DNA of 64,000 nt, taken from positions 1 to 64,000 of IMG/VR virus record IMGVR_UViG_3300050821_002957; one strand, 5' to 3'. The notes beneath the pieces were generated by a model. That model worked only from the letters and a program-made list of their open reading frames with translations, was not told where the DNA came from and made no database searches. Of the stretch, positions 2,078 through 10,478 are shown one piece after another; position 1 is the first letter of the stretch, and every line of letters starts with the position of its first letter. The position numbers and the translations under genes are program-made.

Positions 2078-2560
2078 ATGAACATTCTAAGAAACGTATT
2101 GTTAGCGATGCTTCTTGTTGTAGGGATCGGATATTTGATTTCGCTGTTGCCTCCTCCACATCCTCGACACCACAAAGTCAAAATAGAAAAACTGAAGAAT
2201 GGCCAGTATGCCTACAAGGACAAGAAAGGCAACTGGTGGTTTTACGCCAAAAAAGTTGCAAAGGCTGGGAGTCAAACCGATTTTGATTTCGACTTTAATT
2301 TCACCGGAGCCGAGTTTGGTAAGTCAGCGAGTGGATCGGTGCGTATGCCTTCGGGCGGTTCATGGGTTCGTGCGTCAAATCCTCCCAAGCCGGAAGAAAT
2401 CGAAGAAGAGATTGAAGTGTCTGTCGAAGAGAGCGTCACAGGCGAACCGGAAGGGGACACTGACGACGGCGCAGATGCCGATTCAAGCGATTCTGGCGGC
2501 GATGGCGGCGACGGCGGGGGAGATGGCGGTGGGGATGGTGGAGGCGACGGCGGCGAGTAA
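2078..2560 (+). CDS. Membrane-anchored protein with acidic, Gly/Asp-repeat tail
   Basis: N-terminal TM helix; C-terminal GGDGG repeats. Confidence 0.7.
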   Translation: MNILRNVLLAMLLVVGIGYLISLLPPPHPRHHKVKIEKLKNGQYAYKDKKGNWWFYAKKVAKAGSQTDFDFDFNFTGAEFGKSASGSVRMPSGGSWVRASNPPKPEEIEEEIEVSVEESVTGEPEGDTDDGADADSSDSGGDGGDGGGDGGGDGGGDGGE

Positions 2561-2593: not shown

Positions 2594-3112
2594 ATGTCCC
2601 CAAAGACTGACATGTTCGGAACGCCGGTCATCGATTCATTTCGTGACGACTATCGTTTCCTCAGCAATTTTTATGTTGCACCTGTCTCTCTTTGGGGAAT
2701 TAACTTTCCTTCGTCCGAACATGCCTATCAATGGGCCAAGACAGATGACGAGCTTGAAAAGAAGTTCGTACTCTTCAAGCAGCTTCCGCATGTCCAGGGA
2801 TATCGTGTTATCTCGACTTCTCCCGGCCAAGCGAAGCGTGTAGGTAAGACAGTAACAAAACGTGAAGACTGGGATTTGATTCGTCCTGGCATCATGTTGG
2901 AAATTTTGAGAGCCAAGTTTAGTCAGAATCCCGATCTCAAAGAATTACTCCTGGCGACCGGCGATGCAATTCTCATTGAAGGCAACACATGGCACGACAA
3001 CGACTGGGGCCACTGTACGTGTGAGAACTGCATTACCAAGAAAAAATCCAATATGCTTGGTGCTCTGCTTATGCAGGTTCGAGAAGAATTACAAAATGAA
3101 AGACAAGACTAA
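2594..3112 (+). CDS. NADAR family (YbiA-like) N-glycosidase / ADP-ribosyl hydrolase
   Basis: FLSNFY, FPSSEHAYQWAK, KFSQNPDLKELLLATGDAILIEGN-W-D-WG, NMLGALLMQVR motifs. Confidence 0.9.
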   Translation: MSPKTDMFGTPVIDSFRDDYRFLSNFYVAPVSLWGINFPSSEHAYQWAKTDDELEKKFVLFKQLPHVQGYRVISTSPGQAKRVGKTVTKREDWDLIRPGIMLEILRAKFSQNPDLKELLLATGDAILIEGNTWHDNDWGHCTCENCITKKKSNMLGALLMQVREELQNERQD

Positions 3113-3398
3113 AAACGCAATCGAAAAAAAGCTAACCAAAGTAGAAGAGTTGGTTTCTGACATCAGAGTTTTGATGACAGAACAAGAAACCTTACCAATT
3201 TTGTTGACCGAATATGATACTTGGTTGGTTCCTCGGCGAGTCGAATTTTGTGAAAACTGCATGAACATCAAAGCACAAGTAGGATATGCCGAAGTTGACA
3301 TTGAGGACTACAAGAAGGATACAAACTGTATGCCGAATGTCACATGGTGTCGTACATGTGGAGAGACCGGCAGTATCGGTGTCCTTACTGAGTCCTAA
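3096..3398 (+). CDS. Hypothetical protein with two CxxC motifs
   Basis: ATG 3096 overlaps NADAR end; CENC and CRTC. Confidence 0.6.
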   Translation: MKDKTKNAIEKKLTKVEELVSDIRVLMTEQETLPILLTEYDTWLVPRRVEFCENCMNIKAQVGYAEVDIEDYKKDTNCMPNVTWCRTCGETGSIGVLTES

Positions 3399-3406
3399 AT
3401 AGCAAC

Positions 3407-3652
3407 ATGCTTCTCCAGCACCCTCGCATCTATCTGTTCAGTGCAGCGCTCACCGTGATCAATTTAATCACGTTCTGTATCTGTGTCTACAATGGAAACG
3501 CTACAGGGATTGCGTGGAACGGCGTCTTCCTCATTTTTAATCTCATCGCAACCATTGGCAACTTCCGTATTCGTCATCATCGTGCTATACTACGTGAAGA
3601 ACAGAAAATGGAACGGCGAAATCAACTCATACGTTTGACCATCGGCGAGTAG
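3407..3652 (+). CDS. Small two-TM membrane protein
   Basis: Two hydrophobic segments followed by a basic tail. Confidence 0.6.
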   Translation: MLLQHPRIYLFSAALTVINLITFCICVYNGNATGIAWNGVFLIFNLIATIGNFRIRHHRAILREEQKMERRNQLIRLTIGE

Positions 3653-3663
3653 TTTCTACTTGT

Positions 3664-3756
3664 GGTGGCGTGGTGTATGGTTGCACAGCCTGCCTTATAA
3701 GCAGGGTCGCACTAGATGAGTGCCCGGACTGAGTTCAATTCTCAGCGCCACTACCA
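3664..3756 (+). tRNA. tRNA with UAU (Ile) anticodon and long variable arm, 93 nt
   Basis: Acceptor GGTGGCG/CGCCACT-A-CCA; D stem GTGT/GCAC; CCTGC-CT TAT AA-GCAGG; V stem GCACT/AGTGC; T arm CTGAG-TTCAATT-CTCAG. Confidence 0.85.
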
Positions 3757-3763
3757 AAATTTT

Positions 3764-4327
3764 ATGACATCTCTTGAAAAAGCAGGACAAGCAAAGAACC
3801 TTCTCATTGGCATCGCAGAGAAACTGACGGTGCCTGCGCTGACAGATGCCTGCAAGGTCGTTCTGTACGATCCAACCTTCGTGACGCAATACGGCTCGTC
3901 TGGAAAGCACCACAGCTATCCTGGTGGCTTGGCGATGCATACTCTCGAAGTGACTCAGTTTGCCTTGAAGATGGCCGAGATGCTTCCGATGGCCGATACT
4001 GACGTGGTTGCGACGGCGGCAATTTTTCACGACTACACGAAGATCAAGGAATACGCACCAGCAGCACAATTTGGTGATGGTGGATCGGTACGCCATACCA
4101 ACTATCGAAAATTCATTCGTCACGTTGCCGGAAGTCACGCTGCATTCATGATCGCCATCGAAGGAAAACGAGTGCCGGAAGAAAAGGTGTTCCGCATCGA
4201 GCACGCAATCCTGGCACATCATGGTTCGATTGCAGCAGGAAGTCCGATAGATATGGCGCTCATTGAAGCCTACATCGTGCATTACGCAGATTCATTCAGT
4301 GCAAAATTTGGTCCATCGAAAGGATAA
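3764..4327 (+). CDS. HD-domain hydrolase, YhaM/CBF1-like (no OB fold)
   Basis: HHSYPGGLAMHTLEV, FHDYTK, HAILAHHG, IVHYADSFSA; start moved to 3764 because track ATG 3716 lies inside the tRNA. Confidence 0.85.
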   Translation: MTSLEKAGQAKNLLIGIAEKLTVPALTDACKVVLYDPTFVTQYGSSGKHHSYPGGLAMHTLEVTQFALKMAEMLPMADTDVVATAAIFHDYTKIKEYAPAAQFGDGGSVRHTNYRKFIRHVAGSHAAFMIAIEGKRVPEEKVFRIEHAILAHHGSIAAGSPIDMALIEAYIVHYADSFSAKFGPSKG

Positions 4328-4328
4328 A

Positions 4329-4808
4329 ATGTTACTCGACACAATCAACACTCACATTACCGAAGCAATGAAGGCAAAGGATGGTCCACGTCTGACGACA
4401 CTCCGTGCAATCAAGGTGAAGATTGACGCCTTCATGAAAGAACGCATCAATCGAGTCGAAGTGACCGAGGCTAACGAACAGAAGATCCTGGAGAACCTCG
4501 TCAAGCAGCGCCTTGACTCAATTGAACTGTTCGAGAAAGGCAAGCGTTTGGATTTGGTTGCAATTGAAAGAGCCGAACTTGCGCTCATCAAAAGCTACAT
4601 GCCAAAGGATGCGACCGGCGTAGAGATCGACGCTGCAATTGAACTAGCATTACCGGGACTGCTTTCGACGGGTCCCAAGGCAATTGGTATGGTCATGGCC
4701 GATGTCAAAAAGAGATTGGCTGGCAAACGAGTGGATGGAAAGATTCTCTCAGAAAAAATCAAGGCTCGTTTCGTTGTCGCTGAAGCGAACGGTGAGACAT
4801 TCCATTGA
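4329..4808 (+). CDS. yqeY: GatB/YqeY domain protein
   Basis: EAMKAKD..RLTTLRAIK, KQRLDSIELFEKGKRLDL...E.AELALIKSYMP, IGMVM..VK..LAGKRVDG. Confidence 0.88.
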   Translation: MLLDTINTHITEAMKAKDGPRLTTLRAIKVKIDAFMKERINRVEVTEANEQKILENLVKQRLDSIELFEKGKRLDLVAIERAELALIKSYMPKDATGVEIDAAIELALPGLLSTGPKAIGMVMADVKKRLAGKRVDGKILSEKIKARFVVAEANGETFH

Positions 4809-4996
4809 TCGACTGGAAAAGTCTTGGCCTGAAAAAACCTCAGAAAAGAGCCTCTAGCAATCGTGACTCTAATTCGAGACTTCAGGTCAAGTGCATCTGT
4901 GGTCACAAGCAGTTTGAACATGAGTGTCATCCAGACGAACATTGTTACAAATGTGAATGCCGACAATTCAAGAGGTCCCGTCGTCCAACTGGATAG
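4805..4996 (+). CDS. Small Cys/His-rich protein; 3' end overlaps tRNA-Arg(CCG)
   Basis: CICGH..EH.C...HC..CEC pattern; TTG start. Confidence 0.55.
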   Translation: MIDWKSLGLKKPQKRASSNRDSNSRLQVKCICGHKQFEHECHPDEHCYKCECRQFKRSRRPTG

Positions 4997-5049
4997 GACG
5001 CTACCCTCCGAAGGTTGAAATAGTGGTTCAAATCCACTCGGGACTACCA
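4974..5049 (+). tRNA. trnR: tRNA-Arg(CCG)
   Basis: GGTCCCG/CGGGACT-A-CCA; CTACC-CT CCG AA-GGTTG; AGTGG-TTCAAAT-CCACT. Confidence 0.93.
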
Positions 5050-5062
5050 TCTAGATATTGAC

Positions 5063-5251
5063 ATGAATCTGAATGACAAACCAATTAGCGTCACTGGCTC
5101 TGCCAATCCTGTAATCACTCGTGAAGAATATTATAAACGTCGTGAAAAATCTTCTAGCTACATGCCCGGATTAAAGAAAGGCGATCTCCCAAAGCGTATC
5201 AGGACAGCGGAAGATGATATTGCCGACATGCTTTTTGATCTAACAGAATGA
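5063..5251 (+). CDS. Hypothetical protein
   Basis: 62 aa; ATGA overlap with next ORF. Confidence 0.55.
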   Translation: MNLNDKPISVTGSANPVITREEYYKRREKSSSYMPGLKKGDLPKRIRTAEDDIADMLFDLTE

Positions 5252-5586
5252 CCCAAAAAGAACGACAAGCCATATTTGACGTAGTAGGTCAGGAAGCCGA
5301 TTTCCAAAAAATCTCAGGTTCCAATTTTGAAGTCGCTCTCAAGGAATGGTTTGATGATACTGAGAAACCATTCCCGCCCTATATTACAGACATTATCGTC
5401 CAGGTAATTGTTCAGTTAGCCAAGAAACCGCAATTTGAACACTATAAACTCGACGGAGATGTAGCTTTAAGAGCATTTGAACGGGCACTAAAACGAAGAC
5501 CATTTCGTATGATGGAAAATCCCTTTCCGGCTTTGACGAGAGTCGTCTTCGACAGTTTCATACGGCAGATACAACTAAAAAGATAG
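5248..5586 (+). CDS. Hypothetical protein
   Basis: 112 aa ORF. Confidence 0.65.
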   Translation: MTQKERQAIFDVVGQEADFQKISGSNFEVALKEWFDDTEKPFPPYITDIIVQVIVQLAKKPQFEHYKLDGDVALRAFERALKRRPFRMMENPFPALTRVVFDSFIRQIQLKR

Positions 5587-5636
5587 CTCTGCTATATACC
5601 TGTAGAAGTCGAATCTAATCTTCGACCTAGAGGAAT

Positions 5637-5999
5637 ATGAGCAAAGAAAAAGTACAAGACGACAAAATTTTGTTGCGTCTGCCGTCCACTCTGACATCGG
5701 CAGTTGATCAAGTTATTAGAGAGCAAATCCCAGAGTTAAACCGCTCGGAATTCATCCGCAGGGCAGTTCGTTTTACGCTGGATCATGTCGAAGAATTCAA
5801 GACCAGTGATGCGGCGACCGTTCACGAAAAAACAGAAGTCGAGAGTGTTGCAAAGATCAATGCTGTCCGTGACCTTCGTGACCAATTACTACAATACAAG
5901 GATCTGTTGCAGAAGGAACCACAGACTCCAAACACCATCAAACAACTTTCGTTTTTGATCTTTTTGATCGGCGAAATGATCTTTAAGATGAACGATTAA
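5637..5999 (+). CDS. Ribbon-helix-helix (CopG/Arc-like) DNA-binding protein
   Basis: ILLRLPSTLTSAVDQVI...LNRSEFIRRAVRF; AGAGGA SD. Confidence 0.75.
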   Translation: MSKEKVQDDKILLRLPSTLTSAVDQVIREQIPELNRSEFIRRAVRFTLDHVEEFKTSDAATVHEKTEVESVAKINAVRDLRDQLLQYKDLLQKEPQTPNTIKQLSFLIFLIGEMIFKMND

Positions 6000-6026
6000 T
6001 AAACCGACGCTTGTATACATATTTGC

Positions 6027-6662
6027 ATGGAACAAAAACCGTGCCAAGTGTATTACTGTTACAAAACAACCAACATCATAAATGGAAAGGTTTACATTGG
6101 GTTCGCCAGTGATCCCAAAACTCGCTGGCGAAATCATAGAAGAGACGCTGAAACAGGTCGAGGATTTGCCCTCGCCGCCGCAATCCGAAAGTATGGATGG
6201 GACGCATTTGAATTTGAAGTGCTCTGTTGTGGTAAAGACAAGCGTATGATGTTGGAACACGTCGAGCCTGCATTGATTGAACAATATCAAAGTCGCATTG
6301 AACAAAATGGCTACAATGTAACTCGGGGCGGCGAACACATCCCGGTAGGCAATCGAGGTGGCTCTAAAAAAGGTCGTATTGTTTCTGAAGAATCTCGATG
6401 TAAAATGAGTGCTGCTAAGAAAGGCAATGTTAATGGAGCAGGTAACAAAGGCCATAAACATTCCGATGAAACTAAACAAAAAATGGCAGCAGTCCATCTG
6501 GGTCATTTCGTTTCTGAAGAGACACGCAAGAAAATCGGTAATCGTTATCCTCGCACAGAAGAAGAAAAGCAACACCTAAGCAAAATAAATACGGGCCGAA
6601 AACATTCAGAAGAAACCAAACAGAAGATGGCAGCGACAAGACGAGCAATGAGGATTTTGTGA
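6027..6662 (+). CDS. GIY-YIG homing endonuclease with NUMOD3 repeats (Seg-like)
   Basis: YCYKTTNIINGKVYIG; repeated HS(D/E)ETKQKM. Confidence 0.9.
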   Translation: MEQKPCQVYYCYKTTNIINGKVYIGFASDPKTRWRNHRRDAETGRGFALAAAIRKYGWDAFEFEVLCCGKDKRMMLEHVEPALIEQYQSRIEQNGYNVTRGGEHIPVGNRGGSKKGRIVSEESRCKMSAAKKGNVNGAGNKGHKHSDETKQKMAAVHLGHFVSEETRKKIGNRYPRTEEEKQHLSKINTGRKHSEETKQKMAATRRAMRIL

Positions 6663-6663
6663 C

Positions 6664-6876
6664 GTGTGGAAGTACATCAAGGCACTCTTTACCCATCGGC
6701 CAAAATTCTATCGAGGCACCACAGATAAATTTTGCCACAGCCTTACCGCAAAGGGCAGGCGCATTCGTATTTTCGGATTCGCCTGGGGACCTTTTATGAT
6801 TGCATTCCATACACTCGACTTGACAAATAGCAGACCTTCTGTAAAATACAAAGGGTACTCCAATGAAGCTGACTGA
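6664..6876 (+). CDS. Hypothetical protein
   Basis: 70 aa, GTG start 1 nt after upstream stop. Confidence 0.5.
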   Translation: MWKYIKALFTHRPKFYRGTTDKFCHSLTAKGRRIRIFGFAWGPFMIAFHTLDLTNSRPSVKYKGYSNEAD

Positions 6877-7047
6877 AATGGAAAAGAAAATTTTGTTCGA
6901 TGCAATAACACTGTACAAAAACAGAGCAGAGACGATGTTGATACTACCATCTCGGCACTTCGTAGCAAATTGAAACGTGCTCTGGCTGAAGGAACCAACA
7001 GCACCGGCCCAAGATGATCTATTTGGTTGGAATGCGAAAATAATACC

Positions 7048-7075
7048 TTGACATCCTGATCCAATGTGGTATTCT
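7048..7075 (+). promoter_or_regulatory. sigma70-like promoter upstream of tRNA array
   Basis: TTGACA-16 nt-TATTCT preceded by TGTGG, same layout as 2561..2588. Confidence 0.6.
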
Positions 7076-7083
7076 TAGAACAT

Positions 7084-7156
7084 CAGAGGCGAAGTGCTCT
7101 GTTGAAGGGATCTTGGTTCATCCATGACCCTGCGTAGATAGAGCACTTCGCTGCTG
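7084..7156 (+). ncRNA. Candidate structured RNA / 5' leader hairpin
   Basis: Perfect 12 bp GCGAAGTGCTCT (7089-7100)/AGAGCACTTCGC (7140-7151) with inner AGGG/CCCT and TGG/CCA stems; no ORF. Confidence 0.45.
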
Positions 7157-7164
7157 TATAAATA
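7157..7164 (+). promoter_or_regulatory. T4-type late promoter
   Basis: Exact TATAAATA 17 nt before the leader ATG. Confidence 0.7.
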
Positions 7165-7181
7165 GAAACGAGAACACAGTC

Positions 7182-7229
7182 ATGAGACGAATTACCATTA
7201 CACGCCGAGAGGTTAAACGAAAGCGGTAG
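7182..7229 (+). CDS. Putative leader peptide MRRITITRREVKRKR (15 aa)
   Basis: ATG...TAG immediately downstream of late promoter; stop overlaps 5' arm of a hairpin. Confidence 0.5.
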   Translation: MRRITITRREVKRKR

Positions 7230-7273
7230 CGACAAGCTAACGCTCTAGTGCATTGGTGTTTCGTCGCTGCCGC
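7223..7273 (+). terminator. Hairpin (possible attenuator or processing stem) before first array tRNA
   Basis: GCGGTAGCGAC (7223-7233) pairs with GTCGCTGCCGC (7263-7273), followed by CTTT. Confidence 0.5.
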
Positions 7274-7291
7274 CTTTACAGTTTCCAACAT

Positions 7292-7368
7292 GGATCTGTA
7301 ACTCAAACGGACAGAGTAACCGTCTTTTAAACGGAAGGCTGTGGGATCGTACCCCACCAGATCCACCA
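7292..7368 (+). tRNA. trnK: tRNA-Lys(UUU)
   Basis: GGATCTG/CAGATCC-A-CCA; CT TTT AA loop; atypical T loop ATCGTAC. Confidence 0.92.
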
Positions 7369-7390
7369 AATTTTTCAGTTTTACCCATGT

Positions 7391-7467
7391 GGTCTCGTAG
7401 CTCAATGGATTAGAGTACTTCGCTACGAACGAAGGGGTTGCAGGTTCGAGTCCTGCCGAGACTACCA
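7391..7467 (+). tRNA. trnR: tRNA-Arg(ACG)
   Basis: GGTCTCG/CGAGACT-A-CCA; CTTCG-CT ACG AA-CGAAG. Confidence 0.95.
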
Positions 7468-7477
7468 CAATTTTTGC

Positions 7478-7551
7478 TGGCGATTAGTTCAAAGGTAGAA
7501 CCCCTGGCTGATTACCGGGAGACAAGAGTTCGATTCTCTTATCGCCTACCA
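7478..7551 (+). tRNA. Atypical tRNA with GAU (Ile) anticodon
   Basis: TGGCGAT/ATCGCCT-A-CCA (1:72 T:T); CCTGG-CT GAT TA-CCGGG (T37); AAGAG-TTCGATT-CTCTT. Confidence 0.8.
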
Positions 7552-7999
7552 TTTCGTCATGAATTTCACCATGACAGTTGGAACAGACAAGTATGCATTT
7601 GTTTAATTCGATTTTGATGTCTGACCATGATTTACCGCTGTTGTTTGAGATAGTGAAATCTTTTTGTGACGGATCTGTATGATGAAAATCCAGAGACCGA
7701 AGACATCGATTGTAACCACAGCGAGCACAGGAGCCGCCCAAATATTCTACGGCTTTTGCTTTGATATTTTGCCGACGTTTTTTGACTGATTGATAAGACG
7801 TTATAGTTCGAGGCCGACGAGGAACATGTTTAGCGCAATATGATCGTTTGCTACTGACCGGACTATTGCAAATTTGACATCGCCATTTTGTCCGATATTC
7901 TGTGAAACAATTTCGAGAACAGAATGGATTTGTTGGTTCGATAGATTTAGTTTTTTTGCGGTTGAAGTCTATACCGCAGTGCGTACACCTAAAGGTCAT
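7484..7999 (-). CDS. HNH endonuclease inserted antisense in tRNA array
   Basis: CARCGYNRC..SLDFHH.DP..K...CILVCSNCHGEIH; N-terminal Zn fingers; last codons antisense to tRNA 7478..7551. Confidence 0.88.
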   Translation of the reverse strand: MTFRCTHCGIDFNRKKTKSIEPTNPFCSRNCFTEYRTKWRCQICNSPVSSKRSYCAKHVPRRPRTITSYQSVKKRRQNIKAKAVEYLGGSCARCGYNRCLRSLDFHHTDPSQKDFTISNNSGKSWSDIKIELNKCILVCSNCHGEIHDEMVGDKRIELLSPGNQPGVLPLN

Positions 8000-8004
8000 A
8001 TGAC

Positions 8005-8011
8005 TATTTAG
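8005..8011 (-). promoter_or_regulatory. Late promoter CTAAATA
   Basis: 5 nt upstream of HNH ATG. Confidence 0.7.
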
Positions 8012-8036
8012 GATTAGCGCAATGTTAAGGGTTTGC

Positions 8037-8111
8037 GTCCCTGTAGCTCAACGGATAGAGCACTTGCCTTCTAAGCTCGGGATCTAGGTTCGATTCCTAG
8101 CAGGGATACCA
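8037..8111 (+). tRNA. trnR: tRNA-Arg(UCU)
   Basis: GTCCCTG/CAGGGAT-A-CCA; CTTGC-CT TCT AA-GCTCG (two stem mismatches). Confidence 0.9.
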
Positions 8112-8114
8112 TTT

Positions 8115-8188
8115 AGCCGCATAGCTCAACCCGGTAGAGCGTCTGCCTTACATGCAGAGGGTTCTCAGTTCAACTCTGAGTGTGGCTA
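8115..8188 (+). tRNA. trnV: tRNA-Val(UAC), CCA not encoded (TCA)
   Basis: AGCCGCA/TGTGGCT-A; TCTGC-CT TAC AT-GCAGA; CTCAG-TTCAACT-CTGAG. Confidence 0.9.
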
Positions 8189-8221
8189 TCAAATTTTAAG
8201 TAATAGGAAGAAGTAAAGAAA

Positions 8222-8404
8222 GTGATTTGTAGAGTATGTGGCGAAGAATTTTCGCCCGGAAGTAAACACCCAGGATACATTAATGTATGCCTGCAAGAAG
8301 AATGCAGAGAGACTGCTCGTGAACCTCTGGTGAGGCCGTTGGTATTGACAACTACGGTGAGCGTCCTGTATGATTCTGAAATAGAGACAAGTTTGGACTG
8401 GTAA
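8222..8404 (+). CDS. Small Zn-finger-like hypothetical protein
   Basis: CRVC...C..EEC; GTG start; ends inside tRNA-Lys(CUU). Confidence 0.45.
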   Translation: MICRVCGEEFSPGSKHPGYINVCLQEECRETAREPLVRPLVLTTTVSVLYDSEIETSLDW

Positions 8405-8469
8405 CTCAATGGTAGAGTAACTGGCTCTTAACCAGTAAGTTGTGGGTTCGAGTCCCACCCGGTCCACCA
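8395..8469 (+). tRNA. trnK: tRNA-Lys(CUU)
   Basis: GGACTGG/CCGGTCC-A-CCA; ACTGG-CT CTT AA-CCAGT. Confidence 0.95.
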
Positions 8470-8492
8470 AATTTTGTAGAGGACAAAAAGCA

Positions 8493-9156
8493 ATGCCCAT
8501 CGTAGAAATAAGAGCCGCCGAAGGTGGTCTCGACGCAAAGCTGTTAGTAGATGATCAATTCACGATCTATCTAAAGCTGGCAGAGCGGAGGGGTCTTTGA
8601 GGTTGAGATAACTGAAAAGACTGAAGGATTCGTCGCATTTGTTGTGAGTGGTGACAAAGCCGAAGCAACGTTTGCAAATGAAGCAGGCGGTCATCGCTGG
8701 CAAAGAGTCCCGCCAACCGAACGCAAAGGAAGAATTCAGACAAGCACAATCACGGTTGCTGTCTTGCCTGAACCCCAAGCCGAAGAATTCAAGATTGACG
8801 AAAAGGATCTTGAATGGAGCACAACCATCAGTCAAGGTAAAGGTGGACAGTCGGTCAACACAACTTACTCTTGTGTCATCCTAAAACACAAGCCATCTGG
8901 TGAAACCGTTCGTTGTCAAAATGAGCGATCACAGTTGCGAAACAAGCAGACCGCATTGCGAGTGCTGCGATCACGTCTTCTGGCGCAAAAAGAAAACGCA
9001 GAGCACGCCAGCGAGTCAAAACAACGCAAAGATCAAATTGGTTCGGGTCAGCGTGGAGACAAACGCCGCACGATTCGAGTGAAAGATGGTCAAGTCAATG
9101 ATCATGTGACTGGGCAAAAATGGTCCCTGAAGAAGTACTTGAATGGGGACTGGTAA
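8493..9156 (+). CDS. Class I peptide chain release factor homolog (RF1-type PxT, GGQ) expressed by +1 frameshift at CTT-TGA 8595-8600; about 220 aa
   Basis: Frame 0 MPIVEIRAAEGGLDAK...ERRGL-stop; +1 frame EVEITEK...HRWQRVPPTERKGRIQTS...GKGGQSVN...RTIRVKDGQVNDH. Confidence 0.88.
8587..8601 (+). other. prfB-type programmed +1 frameshift cassette
   Basis: GGAGG-GGT-CTT-TGA-G: internal SD 3 nt before CTT TGA. Confidence 0.88.
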
Positions 9157-9271
9157 AAGCATTTTGTCTAGTCCCGTCCTCTATTTCTTTATCGCACTTA
9201 AGACAGATCGGCACCCCATTTACGTACAGACATGTTTCAGATTTGTGGCAGCGAACACATTCAGTTTTCAT
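9095..9271 (-). CDS. Small CxxC/CxxC protein (58 aa, not in track), convergent with release factor
   Basis: MKTECVRCHKSETCLYVNGVPICLKCDKEIED...; about 40 nt downstream of a minus-strand promoter. Confidence 0.55.
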   Translation of the reverse strand: MKTECVRCHKSETCLYVNGVPICLKCDKEIEDGTRQNAFTSPHSSTSSGTIFAQSHDH

Positions 9272-9311
9272 AAAACACTTTTTGATAGTTTTGATTTAGC
9301 TTCTACACAAA

Positions 9312-9340
9312 ATCTTACAAAACTTCTAAAAAAGTGTCAA
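9312..9340 (-). promoter_or_regulatory. sigma70 promoter pointing toward release factor and tRNA array
   Basis: Minus strand TTGACA-17 nt-TAAGAT with A-rich upstream tract. Confidence 0.7.
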
Positions 9341-9376
9341 TACTCTTTTTGGCTAGGTATGTGATATACTACTTGT

Positions 9377-9452
9377 GGGTCCATCGTCTAACGGGATAGG
9401 GCACTTGTTTCCTAAACTTGAAGTCCAGGTTCGAGTCCTGGTGGGCCTACCA
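9377..9452 (+). tRNA. trnR: tRNA-Arg(CCU)
   Basis: GGGTCCA/TGGGCCT-A-CCA; CTTGT-TT CCT AA-ACTTG (two T:T mismatches). Confidence 0.9.
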
Positions 9453-9496
9453 ATCTCCGCAACTTCTGCGGCGAATAGCACTCTTAATCACCGCAT

Positions 9497-9525
9497 TTGA
9501 CCATCAGACTTCACTCTGCTAAACT
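9497..9525 (+). promoter_or_regulatory. sigma70-like promoter
   Basis: TTGACC-17 nt-TAAACT. Confidence 0.6.
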
Positions 9526-9531
9526 GTTTCC

Positions 9532-9987
9532 ATGAGTTGCTGGAACTACGACGAATTCAAAGCAGAGTTGAAAAGAATCGATCTCGATGTTCCGACTCCT
9601 GAGAAAAAAGCCAGTGGCTATAACAGAGTCGAGTACGGCGGATTGACGCTGATCAACAATAAGCCTGCGTTCGTCAATTCGTGGCACGTTGGTGGATCAT
9701 CAGGAGCCGGATATTGGGGCGATGAGGATCTTCACAGCTATGTTACCGGCGAGCCAGAACCAGAATGGGCCGACCTGACGAAAGTTTTGGAGCACTTCTG
9801 TCCAAGCATTACTTTTTTGAAATATAAGAAGCTGATGACCATCACCAAGTCAGATTCATGGAGCCGAAACGACTACTACGGTAATGAAACGAACTATTCA
9901 TATCGATACGTTTTTGTCGAAAACTTGTTTAGATTTTTGAACGACGACGGACTCATCGAACGAGAAATGGTGGATGACTCAGAATGA
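9532..9987 (+). CDS. Hypothetical protein
   Basis: 151 aa; ATGA overlap with next ORF. Confidence 0.7.
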   Translation: MSCWNYDEFKAELKRIDLDVPTPEKKASGYNRVEYGGLTLINNKPAFVNSWHVGGSSGAGYWGDEDLHSYVTGEPEPEWADLTKVLEHFCPSITFLKYKKLMTITKSDSWSRNDYYGNETNYSYRYVFVENLFRFLNDDGLIEREMVDDSE

Positions 9988-10478
9988 GCGAAGTAATCAT
10001 GATTGTAGGTCTGCCGGGTTCCGGGAAGACCACCTATGCTAGAAAGTTGATTCAAGAAATCAATTTCGCAAAAATTCTTTTCGATGATCCAGGTACTTGT
10101 CGCAAAGGACTTGACGCACTCGAAGAATGGATTGAAGACGGCGAGAATGCTGTAGTGACCGATGTCTACGGCATAACCACAGCAAAGCGCACCGAAATAC
10201 TTGACGCTCTCATTTCCTGGGGCGCAACCAAAATCACCTGGATCTTCTTTGAGAACAATCCAGAAGCGTGCATCCGAAATATCAAACGCCGTAACGAAAA
10301 AGACCCAAATTATCGGGTAGTTGCTGATGTCACAGTGCGGGAGCTTTCTCTTCTTTACCAGATCCCGGACGGTGCCACAGTCATTCCAGTCTATTCGCCA
10401 GTGGTCGATGTAAATATCAAAGGTGAATCTTTCACAGAACAGGATCTCATCGATGCAGGGCAGGATTGGGGCGAATGA
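9984..10478 (+). CDS. P-loop kinase (AAA_33 / polynucleotide-kinase-like)
   Basis: VIMIVGLPGSGKTT Walker A; ACIRNIKRR lid-like motif. Confidence 0.75.
   Translation: MSEVIMIVGLPGSGKTTYARKLIQEINFAKILFDDPGTCRKGLDALEEWIEDGENAVVTDVYGITTAKRTEILDALISWGATKITWIFFENNPEACIRNIKRRNEKDPNYRVVADVTVRELSLLYQIPDGATVIPVYSPVVDVNIKGESFTEQDLIDAGQDWGE

Follow-up and report, generated by a model that had tools for sequence, protein, structure and literature searches.

Gene content of the tRNA region

The window, a 64,000-nucleotide stretch, is bases 1-64000 of a single 405,631-bp contig from a soil metagenome, which CheckV rates 100% complete. Within it, positions 2,594 to 10,478 carry nine tRNA genes, a release factor (RF) gene interrupted by a stop codon, a short leader ORF flanked by two hairpins, and genes for a NADAR-family protein, an HD-domain protein, a YqeY-family protein and a small kinase (Table 1). 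An earlier note had listed these components, and every one of them is present where the note placed it. The note did not mention two homing endonucleases or about eight small ORFs of unknown function in the same stretch.

Table 1. Features of the region, with coordinates in the window and supporting evidence
Position	Strand	Feature	Support
2594-3112	+	NADAR-family protein (172 aa), with its own weak promoter-like site at 2561-2588	Pfam NADAR E 1.3e-25; phrog_1017 E 4e-40; NCBIfam NADAR anti-phage family E 3e-17, below its cut-off
3664-3756	+	tRNA with anticodon UAU (called Ile), long 5-bp variable arm and A73; class-II-like, amino-acid identity uncertain	ARAGORN; Rfam tRNA 43.4 bits when searched alone; minimum-energy fold a cloverleaf with an extra arm
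3764-4327	+	HD-domain protein resembling the HD domain of the YhaM exoribonuclease, without the OB fold; ORF opens at 3716, but the second Met at 3764 clears the tRNA	Pfam HD E 4e-10; PDB 9h3f YhaM E 2.5e-15, residues 141-281; NCBIfam YhaM E 1e-15, far below its cut-off
4326-4808	+	YqeY-family protein (GatB C-terminal-like tRNA-binding domain)	Pfam YqeY E 1.7e-31; phrog_1460
4974-5049	+	tRNA-Arg (CCG)	ARAGORN; Rfam 57.7 bits
6027-6662	+	GIY-YIG / NUMOD3 homing endonuclease	Pfam and PHROG matches
7048-7075	+	sigma70-type promoter (TTGACA, 16 nt, TATTCT with an upstream TG) for the leader and tRNA unit	Promoter scan
7084-7156	+	Long hairpin (16-bp stem) between promoter and leader ORF	Inverted repeat; fold of the 220-nt region 7076-7295 containing it, z-score -5.3 against shuffles
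7182-7229	+	Leader mini-ORF (15 codons) MRRITITRREVKRKR with a TAG stop	Sequence; codon enrichment (see text)
7219-7276 (approximate)	+	Hairpin (11-bp stem plus 3 more pairs) whose 5' arm covers the last leader codons and the stop, followed by CUUUACAGUUU; candidate attenuator	Folds; ribosome modelling (see text)
7292-7551	+	tRNA-Lys (UUU) 7292-7368, tRNA-Arg (ACG) 7391-7467, tRNA-Ile (GAU) 7478-7551	ARAGORN; Rfam 59.8, 65.5 and 55.7 bits
7484-7999	-	HNH homing endonuclease; 3' end overlaps tRNA-Ile (GAU) on the opposite strand	phrog_2255 E 2e-26
7874-8190	+	Promoter 7874-7901, tRNA-Arg (UCU) 8037-8111, tRNA-Val (UAC) 8114-8190	ARAGORN; Rfam; promoter scan
8345-8469	+	Promoter 8345-8374, tRNA-Lys (CUU) 8395-8469, 23 nt upstream of the RF start codon	ARAGORN; Rfam; promoter scan
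8493-8600	+	RF N-terminal piece (35 codons, aligning to RF1 residues about 108-139) ending in GGAGG 8587-8591, spacer GGT, CTT 8595-8597, TGA 8598-8600	Translation; PDB RF1 match E 0.003
8599-9156	+	RF C-terminal piece in the +1 frame, with a PPT tripeptide (PxT type) and a GGQ motif; RF-1 domain plus the tail of the PCRF domain at 8644-9156	PDB RF1 E 4e-40, RF2 E 1e-22; NCBIfam prfA E 2e-57, prfB E 4e-36
9377-9452	+	tRNA-Arg (CCU)	ARAGORN; Rfam 46 bits
9532-9987	+	ORF of unknown function (151 aa) whose end overlaps the kinase start by 4 nt	No family match
9984-10478	+	Small AAA_33 P-loop kinase, PNK-like by predicted fold, no phosphatase domain	AF2 model pLDDT 89; PDB fold matches; NCBIfam PNK-3'Pase E 6e-7

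All nine tRNAs were called by ARAGORN, and Rfam's tRNA model confirms eight of them at 46-74 bits; the ninth is the UAU tRNA. The tRNA-Ile (GAU), which the note called odd, has a U.U first pair.

The kinase is PNK-like at the level of fold. The seven best PDB matches to its model are the kinase domain of mammalian PNKP (E about 6e-7, TM 0.63), PNK-3'Pase is its best NCBIfam match, and residues G9-K15 and D35 are invariant in 28 homologues. Its closest homologue sits beside a DUF4419 gene on a 5-kb JGI contig, where it is preceded by a 149-aa ORF in the same overlapping position as the 151-aa ORF here.

These matches raise the possibility of an RNA end-healing set. In this view the kinase, with its conserved upstream partner, and the HD phosphoesterase would heal broken or immature tRNA ends, and distant Rnl2-type RNA ligases and a CCA-adding enzyme encoded in this genome would finish them, with the neighboring tRNAs as substrates. 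The invariant Asp35 is as in T4 Pnk. YhaM takes part in 3' trimming of CCA-encoding tRNA precursors in Bacillus, and most tRNAs here encode CCA. However, there is no phosphatase domain and no adjacent ligase, and the AAA_33 family also holds sugar, nucleotide and tRNA-linked kinases. With the kinase substrate inferred from fold alone, we consider this reading very unlikely.

Genome context and synteny

We next asked whether the region is a self-contained unit. The earlier note had proposed a coordinated, stress-gated island with two ribosome-based sensors, the leader and the frameshift, that replaces tRNAs and termination activity lost to host defense. It reasoned from the full Arg set and both Lys tRNAs to anticodon nucleases such as PrrC and colicin D-type enzymes. 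In such an island, the HD protein, YqeY and the kinase would act as repair helpers.

The genome carries 44 tRNAs and a tmRNA. The tRNAs are grouped by amino acid and decode 55 of 61 codons, which is 90% of codon usage; only Phe lacks a tRNA. The sets for Leu (5), Ser (4), Thr (3), Gln (2) and Glu (2) are as full as those for Arg and Lys, and so the inference from the Arg and Lys sets to nuclease targets fails. The anticodon loop of tRNA-Lys (UUU) reads CUUUUAA, which is also the loop of E. coli tRNA-Lys, so it gives no sign of nuclease evasion.

The note had itself named a lack of co-occurrence in relatives as grounds for rejecting the island, and this is largely what we observed. Among 74 viral loci with a related RF, tRNAs lie within 10 kb of the RF in 55, where it is embedded in tRNA arrays, and a same-strand tRNA lies 300 nt or less upstream in 21 of 64 unique genes. 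Within the same 10 kb, a NADAR homolog occurs in 11 loci and YqeY in 2, while the HD protein, the kinase and all the small ORFs occur in none. The RF relatives were collected partly through the motif WQRVPPTE, making them a biased sample. In five large related records, four of them CheckV-complete, YqeY occurs in one; the HD query found nothing, in a search that had no positive control.

The stretch is also not one transcription unit. It holds at least four consensus sigma70-type promoters, at 6820, 7048, 7874 and 8345. The promoter at 7048 is one of 96 exact TTGACA-N16-18-TAnnnT sites in the genome, against about 9 expected by chance. The RNA ligases and the CCA-adding enzyme lie 150-350 kb away. 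NADAR enzymes are known to reverse ADP-ribosylation of DNA bases by DarT (PMC11825919, PMC11543638), which is not a block on translation. Leaders similar to the one here also guard the Pro/Leu/Ser and Thr clusters, and the kinase has no phosphatase domain.

An island against anticodon nucleases therefore appears unlikely to us, although all its components are present, the kinase is PNK-like by fold, ligases and a CCA enzyme exist in the genome, and the leader would respond to loss of tRNA-Arg or tRNA-Lys. Phage tRNAs are known to defeat tRNA-cutting defenses (PMC10264068, PMC11555353, PMC11464382). A role of the whole tRNA set against such defenses is not excluded; it is simply not specific to this stretch.

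A release factor gene with a +1 shift site

The RF reading frame opens at ATG 8493 and stops at a TGA straight after CTT, while the homology continues in the +1 frame. The product is RF1-type, starts at the equivalent of RF1 residue about 106, and is about 220 aa long with no domain 1. It contains the only RF-1 domain in the genome. Its synthesis needs a prfB-like +1 shift, with an SD-like GGAGG, 3 nt, CUU and a stop. This cassette recurs in 42 of 73 related viral RF genes, as CTT TGA in 28, CTT TAG in 13 and CTT TAA in 1, mostly with GGAGG or GGGGG upstream. A contig in an RNA library matches 8569-8745 exactly, so the site is not edited there, and another matches 7133-7388, across the leader, exactly. 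These contigs may be DNA carry-over.

Leader ORFs upstream of tRNA genes

Of the 14 codons that follow the start of the leader ORF, 11 are Arg, Lys, Ile or Val, the amino acids of the tRNAs encoded next. Under a rule fixed beforehand (the first ATG ORF after a promoter), cognate codons are enriched (9 of 14, p 2e-4); at the amino-acid level the p-value is 5e-5. The same rule gave 4e-5 for the leader of the Thr cluster and 2e-10 for that of the Pro/Leu/Ser cluster elsewhere in this genome, while six of nine promoter-proximal first ORFs show no enrichment. Each of the three leaders has a consensus promoter and a hairpin over its stop codon. That the leaders cover every anticodon class is no more than expected once the enrichment is given.

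To control for chance, we scored sense-strand ORFs upstream of tRNAs across this genome and the 74 loci for cognate amino acids. At p<1e-3 there are 12, against 1 on the antisense strand and 1-3 with permuted tRNA sets. At p<1e-4 there are 7, against 0 and 0-1.

Leaders also occur in relatives, where terminator and antiterminator pairings co-vary. Seven relatives (six distinct sequences) share a Met/Pro/Phe-rich leader before Pro/Met/Phe clusters. A segment inside that ORF pairs with the 5' arm of a downstream hairpin (-18 to -21 kcal/mol), as an alternative to the hairpin itself (-15 to -20 kcal/mol), and changes in the three segments compensate one another. Hairpins followed by a U tract, the form of an intrinsic terminator, follow the leaders in four related loci (our labels L006, L008, L026 and L065). 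A homologous leader is Leu-rich where Tyr and Leu tRNAs follow, and reads YYY where only Tyr follows.

For the leader in the window, a modeled ribosome at codons 12 to the stop abolishes the hairpin, while one at codons 2-9 does not. The hairpins after the leaders in this genome lack good U tracts, and no separate antiterminator was found for the window's own leader. The output (termination, processing or stability) and the sign of regulation are therefore unproven. The leader ORFs also have weak or no Shine-Dalgarno sequences, although only about a third of this phage's genes show one.

These features leave room for plain translational autonomy without sensing, in which the tRNAs and the RF simply top up the host machinery for a very large genome. 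The mini-ORFs would be chance or non-functional, the hairpins would be processing or stability elements of tRNA precursors, and the frameshift would merely set a fixed low level of RF. We regard this as doubtful. The enrichment exceeds both controls, leader composition follows the identity of the downstream tRNAs between homologous leaders, and three RNA segments co-vary in six distinct relatives in the pattern of an attenuator. A fixed low level would need neither the SD spacing nor the in-frame stop kept in 42 RF genes.

Demand-gated tRNA supply as the favored model

The interpretation in the earlier note is thus supported in part: both proposed sensors look real and have independent support, while the self-contained anti-defense island is not supported. 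With moderate confidence, we favor a reading in which the stretch is one segment of a dispersed translation-supply system in a complete 406-kb soil huge phage. Its conserved core is a set of tRNA genes transcribed from host-type (sigma70-like) promoters, with a small RF gene embedded among them. NADAR, the YhaM-like HD protein, YqeY, the PNK-like kinase and the two homing endonucleases are accessory genes that sit in the same early, plus-strand block and are not conserved partners of this core. NADAR alone shows partial linkage.

In this model, two cis-acting devices read the state of the ribosome. If charged tRNAs matching the leader are scarce, a ribosome stalls on its last codons and keeps the hairpin from forming. 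Transcription, or maturation of the precursor, would then run on into tRNA-Lys, Arg, Ile, Arg and Val. If the tRNAs are plentiful, the ribosome terminates and leaves, the hairpin forms, and output would fall, resulting in supply on demand. At the RF gene, the factor would be made only when a ribosome slips +1 on CUU U at the in-frame UGA, helped by the upstream GGAGG. UGA is read by RF2, not RF1, and so by inference the yield depends on how fast host RF2 clears that codon. Our analysis establishes the gene identities, the frameshift cassette and its conservation, the cognate-codon enrichment and the alternative pairings in relatives, whereas the direction of regulation and the biochemical activities are inferred.

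We found no description of leader-peptide control of tRNA genes or of frameshifting in an RF1 gene. The shift site is prfB-like, but since the RF is RF1-type while the shift-site stop is UGA, the classical autoregulatory logic does not apply and the sensing role is a guess. Huge phages commonly carry tRNAs, RF1/RF2 and tmRNA (PMC7162821); here the RF is a shortened, RF1-type factor encoded across a programmed frameshift and set among tRNA genes.

Genome context and gene content

The contig that holds the window (as its bases 1-64000) is a 405,631-bp IMG/VR virus record with 46% G+C, rated 100% complete by CheckV and assembled from a soil metagenome. A near-identity search of 2594-10478 against 50,697 deposited phage genomes found no match, and a 934-aa protein from the window's minus-strand block of long ORFs found no relative there either, leaving no close relative against which to align the window's own leader at the nucleotide level. 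An alternative genetic code was considered and rejected, since long ORFs are intact under code 11 and all three stop codons are used (237 TAA, 226 TGA and 116 TAG). The genome holds 96 exact TTGACA-N16-18-TAnnnT sites, against about 9 expected by chance, and therefore leans heavily on a host sigma70-type polymerase.

Every component listed in the earlier note is present. Nine tRNA genes lie in the stretch, of which eight pass Rfam at 46-74 bits. The ninth, with anticodon UAU, was missed in a first Rfam run and suspected of being a chance call. This was rejected, as it scores 43.4 bits when searched alone and folds as a cloverleaf with a 5-bp extra arm and A73. Such tRNAs, with a long, class-II-like variable arm (84-93 nt) but with anticodons for Ile, Asn, Lys, Met, His, Pro or Gln, are common in this group of huge phages. 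They occur elsewhere in this genome and in many of the related loci collected below (for example L013, L025, L033, L037 and L058). If LeuRS or SerRS charged them, they would recode sense codons.

The protein assignments also hold. NADAR and YqeY are family matches. The HD protein (187-203 aa) has its only strong match to the HD domain of YhaM (PDB 9h3f, E 2.5e-15 over residues 141-281). It aligns only to this C-terminal part, without the N-terminal OB fold of the exoribonuclease, and scores 57.5 bits against an NCBIfam cut-off of 460. The P-loop kinase is a kinase domain only, of 164 aa. Its model has pLDDT 89, its seven best PDB matches are the kinase domain of mammalian PNKP, and its best NCBIfam match is PNK-3'Pase. 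Its Walker A residues (G9-K15) and Asp35 are invariant in 28 homologues. Two homing endonucleases and several small ORFs of unknown function share the stretch. Two of these small ORFs give weak matches to regulator families and may be regulators inside the tRNA region. The genes on either side of the stretch show nothing related to translation.

Coordinates of the features discussed (nucleotide positions in the phage genome)
Position	Strand	Feature	Remark
2078-2560		ORF ending in a long acidic Gly/Asp repeat (GGDGGGD...)	Low-complexity DNA (2078-2631) just upstream of NADAR; the opposite strand reads as a Pro/Ser repeat
3664-9452	+	Nine tRNA genes	
3664-3756	+	tRNA with anticodon UAU	Long, class-II-like variable arm
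5248-5586 and 5637-5999		Two small ORFs	Weak matches, one to a phage late sigma factor family (phrog_234, E 1e-4) and one to ribbon-helix-helix regulators (E 0.008)
7048-7075		Promoter before the leader	
7084-7156		16-bp hairpin with a structured loop	Between the promoter and the leader ORF
7133-7388		Region matched exactly by a metatranscriptome contig	Leader through tRNA-Lys
7182-7229		Leader ORF, 15 codons (MRRITITRREVKRKR)	Stop TAG 7227-7229
7478-7551	+	tRNA-Ile (GAU)	
7484-7999	-	HNH homing-endonuclease ORF	Its last 22 or so codons run antisense through tRNA-Ile (GAU)
7874-7901	+	Promoter for the next tRNA pair	Inside the HNH ORF, on the other strand
8493		ATG of the release-factor N-terminal frame	
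8569-8745		Region matched exactly by a metatranscriptome contig	Shift site, unedited
8587-8591		GGAGG of the shift site	Followed by the spacer GGT
8595-8597		CTT of the shift site	
8598-8600		TGA of the shift site	Followed by G
9532-10478		Unknown 151-aa ORF and the kinase	Overlap by 4 nt
121268-121363	-	31-codon leader ORF before the Pro/Leu/Ser cluster	22 of its 30 codons are Leu, Pro or Ser
about 137.5 kb		ATP-dependent DNA ligase	Inside the Glu/Thr tRNA region, next to an AlkB-like oxygenase
about 154 kb and about 356 kb		Rnl2-type RNA ligases	
183192-183533 and 183961-184276		tmRNA (tag ANAPAFAFAAAA), and the promoter, Thr-rich leader and Thr tRNA pair	The tmRNA lies just upstream of the promoter, the leader and the tRNA pair
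184041-184088		15-codon leader ORF before Thr-CGU and Thr-GGU	Seven Thr codons
282 kb		CCA-adding enzyme	
290866-290953		Second tRNA with a class-II-like variable arm	

An RF1-type release factor with a prfB-like shift site

The release-factor (RF) gene begins with a frame of 35 residues that align to RF1 residues 108-139, the piece starting at the equivalent of RF1 residue about 106. This frame ends at a TGA straight after CTT, and the homology continues in the +1 frame to RF1 residues about 158-318. The +1-frame product carries the GGQ motif (Pfam RF-1 domain, E 3e-30) and a PxT-type tripeptide, PPT, within QRVPPTE. Profiles favour RF1 over RF2 by 17-21 orders of magnitude (PDB RF1 E 4e-40 against RF2 E 1e-22; NCBIfam prfA 194.6 bits against prfB 124.8 bits). 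PrfH (RF-H) was also considered and rejected, because its match is far weaker than that to RF1 (E 1e-19 against 2e-57). The four-domain architecture of RF1 (about 360 aa) is not complete, as domain 1 is missing. The total length is about 220 aa, and the score lies below the full-length NCBIfam cut-off of 400 bits. This is the only RF-1 domain in the genome.

The layout of the site, with an SD-like GGAGG 3 nt upstream of CUU U at an in-frame stop, is the architecture of the prfB shift site. We collected 74 viral loci (designated L-numbers here) that encode relatives at 38-57% identity, many on contigs of 100-480 kb. One seed pattern used for retrieval was WQRVPPTE, so the sample is biased towards this subfamily. 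Of the 73 loci in which the N-terminal piece could be located, 42 need the same +1 shift, 28 at CTT TGA, 13 at CTT TAG and 1 at CTT TAA, and most have GGAGG or GGGGG upstream. The remaining genes, about 31 (among loci L026-L073), are in frame, and most carry an in-frame TGA exactly where RF1 has a conserved Trp. Many of these contigs also carry a CUA (amber-suppressor-type) tRNA within 1-3 kb. An RF1-type factor together with TAG suppression and an internal TGA is hard to reconcile.

The evidence that frameshifting occurs is indirect, and rests on the continued homology, the conserved cassette and a metatranscriptome contig that carries the unedited site. A 2025 survey of 12,753 bacterial genomes found no programmed frameshift in prfA and never found TAG in the prfB motif (PMC12421855). 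The huge-phage and stop-codon-recoding papers that we searched by term mention phage RFs but no frameshift.

Candidate leader ORFs enriched in the codons of the downstream tRNAs

The promoter before the leader is followed in order by a 16-bp hairpin, a 15-codon ORF, and an 11-bp hairpin whose 5' arm covers the last codons and the stop. tRNA-Lys (UUU) begins 18 nt later, then Arg (ACG) and Ile (GAU), with Arg (UCU), Val (UAC) and Lys (CUU) further on. Eleven of the 14 codons after the start are Arg, Lys, Ile or Val. The first hairpin is very stable (the 220-nt region that contains it folds with a z-score of -5.3), but it matches no Rfam family and has no obvious role in an attenuator model.

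This composition could be coincidence, so we looked for replicates. In this genome a 31-codon ORF precedes the Pro/Leu/Ser cluster and a 15-codon ORF precedes a Thr pair, while weaker cases precede Tyr (a YYY run) and Asp/Thr. Each has a consensus promoter upstream and a hairpin over its stop codon. Enrichment was then scored under a rule fixed beforehand, which takes the first ATG ORF of at least 7 codons after a promoter lying within 400 nt upstream of a tRNA and scores cognacy by wobble rules. Three of nine ORFs are enriched. In the window's leader 9 of 14 codons are cognate (p 2e-4), and two further leaders in the genome give p 4e-5 and 2e-10. Across this genome plus the 74 loci, 12 sense ORFs reach p<1e-3, whereas the antisense strand gives 1 and permuted tRNA sets give 1-3. 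We also tested whether the leaders act as 'samplers' that cover every anticodon class of their cluster more than chance would. This is not significant once the enrichment is given (p 0.42 and 0.61), and the idea was dropped. The stop codons of the candidate leaders in this genome (the window's and five to six others) are TAG five times, TAA twice and TGA never, against 20% TAG genome-wide. TAG is the RF1-specific stop and the phage encodes an RF1-type factor, but leaders in relatives do not follow this consistently and we make no claim from it.

Relatives give the mechanism its best support. Seven contigs (six distinct sequences) share a Met/Pro/Phe-rich leader before Pro/Met/Phe tRNA clusters. 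A G-rich segment near the end of that ORF can pair with the 5' arm of a downstream hairpin at -18 to -21 kcal/mol, where shuffled versions of the segment give about -9 to -14. That 5' arm alternatively pairs with the 3' arm at -15 to -20 kcal/mol, and substitutions in the three segments compensate one another. No such separate antiterminator was found in the window. Hairpins with clear U tracts, the form of an intrinsic terminator, follow the leaders in L006, L008, L026 and L065, and the window's own hairpin is followed only by CUUUACAGUUU. L026 has a Lys/Arg/Val-rich leader before Lys, Val, Lys, Arg, Arg, Val, and L037 and L058 share a Lys-rich leader before tRNA-Lys, with compensatory changes in its hairpin. 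A homologous leader is Leu-rich where Tyr plus five Leu tRNAs follow, and reads YYY in this genome, where only Tyr follows. Two metatranscriptome runs from soil contain contigs identical to the leader through tRNA-Lys and to the shift site, although DNA carry-over cannot be excluded.

The stretch is probably not a self-contained island

The earlier note read the stretch as a coordinated, stress-gated module that replaces tRNAs and termination activity lost to host defence, partly because it carries complete Arg and Lys sets. The step from these sets to nuclease targets does not survive the whole-genome view. There are 44 tRNAs and a tmRNA, grouped by amino acid, with Leu 5, Ser 4, Arg 4, Thr 3, and Gln, Glu and Lys 2 each. 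They decode 55 of 61 codons by strict wobble. Only Phe lacks a tRNA, although Phe codons make up 4.2% of usage, and only one CAU-anticodon tRNA was found. As to anticodon-loop variants that would evade nucleases, the loop of tRNA-Lys (UUU) reads CUUUUAA, which is also the E. coli tRNA-Lys loop, the host of this phage being unidentified.

Co-occurrence in relatives had been named as the test of the island, and was examined within 10 kb of the RF in the 74 loci. tRNAs occur in 55, but their identities vary. The closest relatives have Leu, Pro, Met and Phe, and there the Phe tRNAs sit next to the RF. A same-strand tRNA lies within 300 nt upstream of 21 of 64 unique RF genes. NADAR occurs in 11 loci (among them L002, L003, L006 and L008), and in four it lies within about 0.7 kb downstream of the RF (L018, L019, L030 and L066, directly following it in L019). 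These NADAR genes sit inside tRNA arrays in several unrelated contigs, an unexplained link between an ADP-ribose-removing enzyme and translation genes. YqeY occurs in 2 loci, and the HD protein, the kinase and every small ORF in none. In five large related records (four CheckV-complete), YqeY is present in one and the HD query found nothing, in a search that had no positive control. Pattern-based retrieval of YqeY relatives in viral contigs found none.

The kinase travels with its upstream 150-aa partner, not with the RF core. The same pair, also with a 4-nt overlap, occurs on a 5-kb JGI contig with 59% kinase identity, next to a DUF4419 gene, as judged from the protein-coding genes of that contig alone. 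This looks like a two-gene module of its own. RNA ligases of the Rnl2 type and the CCA-adding enzyme lie elsewhere in the genome, and a third ligase-like hit, inside a tRNA region, is a DNA ligase. A search for an Rnl1-type ligase (PF09511) found nothing, but is uninformative because it also found nothing in any control genome. The stretch itself holds at least four separate consensus promoters.

The expected co-occurrence is therefore largely absent for the island, whereas the two proposed sensors and the link between the RF and tRNA arrays stand. The note's observation is confirmed, and its interpretation is supported only in part. The stretch is best described as one segment of a genome-wide, demand-gated tRNA and termination supply system with unrelated accessory genes interspersed. 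For annotation, this warns against reading a local run of tRNAs as a targeted counter-defence without looking at the whole genome.

A model for demand-gated supply

In the relatives the layout is the classical one. A ribosome that reaches the stop codon would cover segment 2, so that the 3:4 hairpin forms, whereas a ribosome stalled earlier on hungry codons would leave segment 2 free to take segment 3, and the hairpin would fail to form. In this genome the design is shorter, because the hairpin's 5' arm is itself the end of the ORF. Modelling a ribosome at codons 12 to the stop removes the hairpin, and modelling it at codons 2-9 does not. A stall on the final Lys-Arg-Lys-Arg codons would therefore keep the hairpin open, and normal termination would let it close. 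The hairpin may either terminate transcription or block maturation of the tRNA precursor. The U tracts here are poor. For the RF, the shift should become more frequent when the UGA is cleared slowly. That depends on RF2, not on the RF1-type product, and what the site senses is not settled by the sequence. The gene identities, the shift cassette and its conservation, the codon enrichment and the compensating pairings in relatives are read from the sequences. Translation of the leader, the direction of its control, the frameshift itself, peptide release at UAA and UAG, and the activities of the accessory enzymes are inferred.

A further reading is possible, though we hold it to be somewhat less likely than not. 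Huge phages may gate their tRNA operons with leader peptides written in the codons that the downstream tRNAs read. The ribosome would then report shortage of particular tRNAs directly, whether from host shut-off, starvation or tRNA-cutting defences, and switch on exactly the matching phage tRNAs. This would also explain why the tRNAs are grouped by amino acid. The same phages would make a domain-1-less RF1 through a frameshift whose stop codon (UGA here) is read by the other release factor, so that termination capacity is cross-sensed rather than self-sensed. Both devices would be new uses of known recoding and attenuation principles, and they are the parts of the stretch that merit attention. 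Why phages carry tRNAs has been argued for about fifty years, with codon compensation, host shut-off and escape from tRNA nucleases as the main candidates. If tRNA operons are gated by leaders made of their own cognate codons, the phage itself shows what it monitors, the momentary supply of particular tRNAs, and the question becomes testable with simple reporters. This would be, to our knowledge, the first leader-peptide attenuation that controls tRNA genes, and the frameshift would be the first conserved programmed one in an RF1-type gene.

Comparison with known systems

Phage NADAR enzymes neutralise DarT1 (PMC11825919, PMC11543638), and the window likewise encodes a stand-alone NADAR-domain protein. 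The known activity removes ADP-ribose from DNA bases, so by analogy it does not bear on translation. In the T4 and T5 tRNA regions, with their counter-measures to tRNA-cutting defences (T4 Pnk/Rnl1 against PrrC; T5 tRNAs against PARIS and retron effectors; PMC10264068, PMC11464382, PMC11555353), tRNA genes are also interspersed with homing endonucleases and small ORFs, and a PNK-like kinase and RNA ligases are present in this genome too. Here, however, the tRNA set is near-complete rather than selective, the kinase has no fused 3'-phosphatase domain and is not linked to a ligase, and nothing shows resistance of these tRNAs to any nuclease.

The translation gene sets of huge phages (Al-Shayeb et al. 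2020, PMC7162821) share a genome of over 200 kb with dozens of tRNAs, a tmRNA, release factors, a CCA-adding enzyme and RNA ligases, and the best database matches of the RF include records from that study's accession series. That work catalogues the genes. A term search of its text showed no mention of leader ORFs before tRNA clusters, grouping of tRNAs by amino acid, loss of RF domain 1 or a frameshift.

The programmed +1 frameshift of bacterial prfB (RF2) shares CUU U followed by an in-frame stop, the SD-like GGAGG 3 nt upstream and often a C after the stop, and is conserved across many genes. The gene here is RF1-type, and its site lies at the position of a conserved Trp in domain 2, not at codon 26 of domain 1. 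With UGA the factor would not be regulating itself, while the UAG in 13 relatives, a stop not seen in the bacterial prfB motif (PMC12421855), would fit autoregulation.

Leader-peptide transcription attenuators of amino-acid operons (his, thr, leu, ilv, trp; pheM before pheST) likewise place a short ORF enriched in the codons whose supply is being sensed just after a promoter, and an RNA hairpin forms or not depending on where the ribosome sits. Literature searches found no description of such control of tRNA genes. Here the controlled genes would be the tRNAs themselves, not biosynthetic enzymes or synthetases, and one leader mixes codons for several amino acids, matching a mixed tRNA cluster. 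In this genome the hairpin overlaps the stop codon directly, without a separate antiterminator or a clear U tract being seen, whereas relatives show a full set of 2:3 antiterminator and 3:4 hairpin pairings that co-vary. In some relatives the 3' arm of the hairpin is the 5' end of the first tRNA, which points to control of folding or processing.
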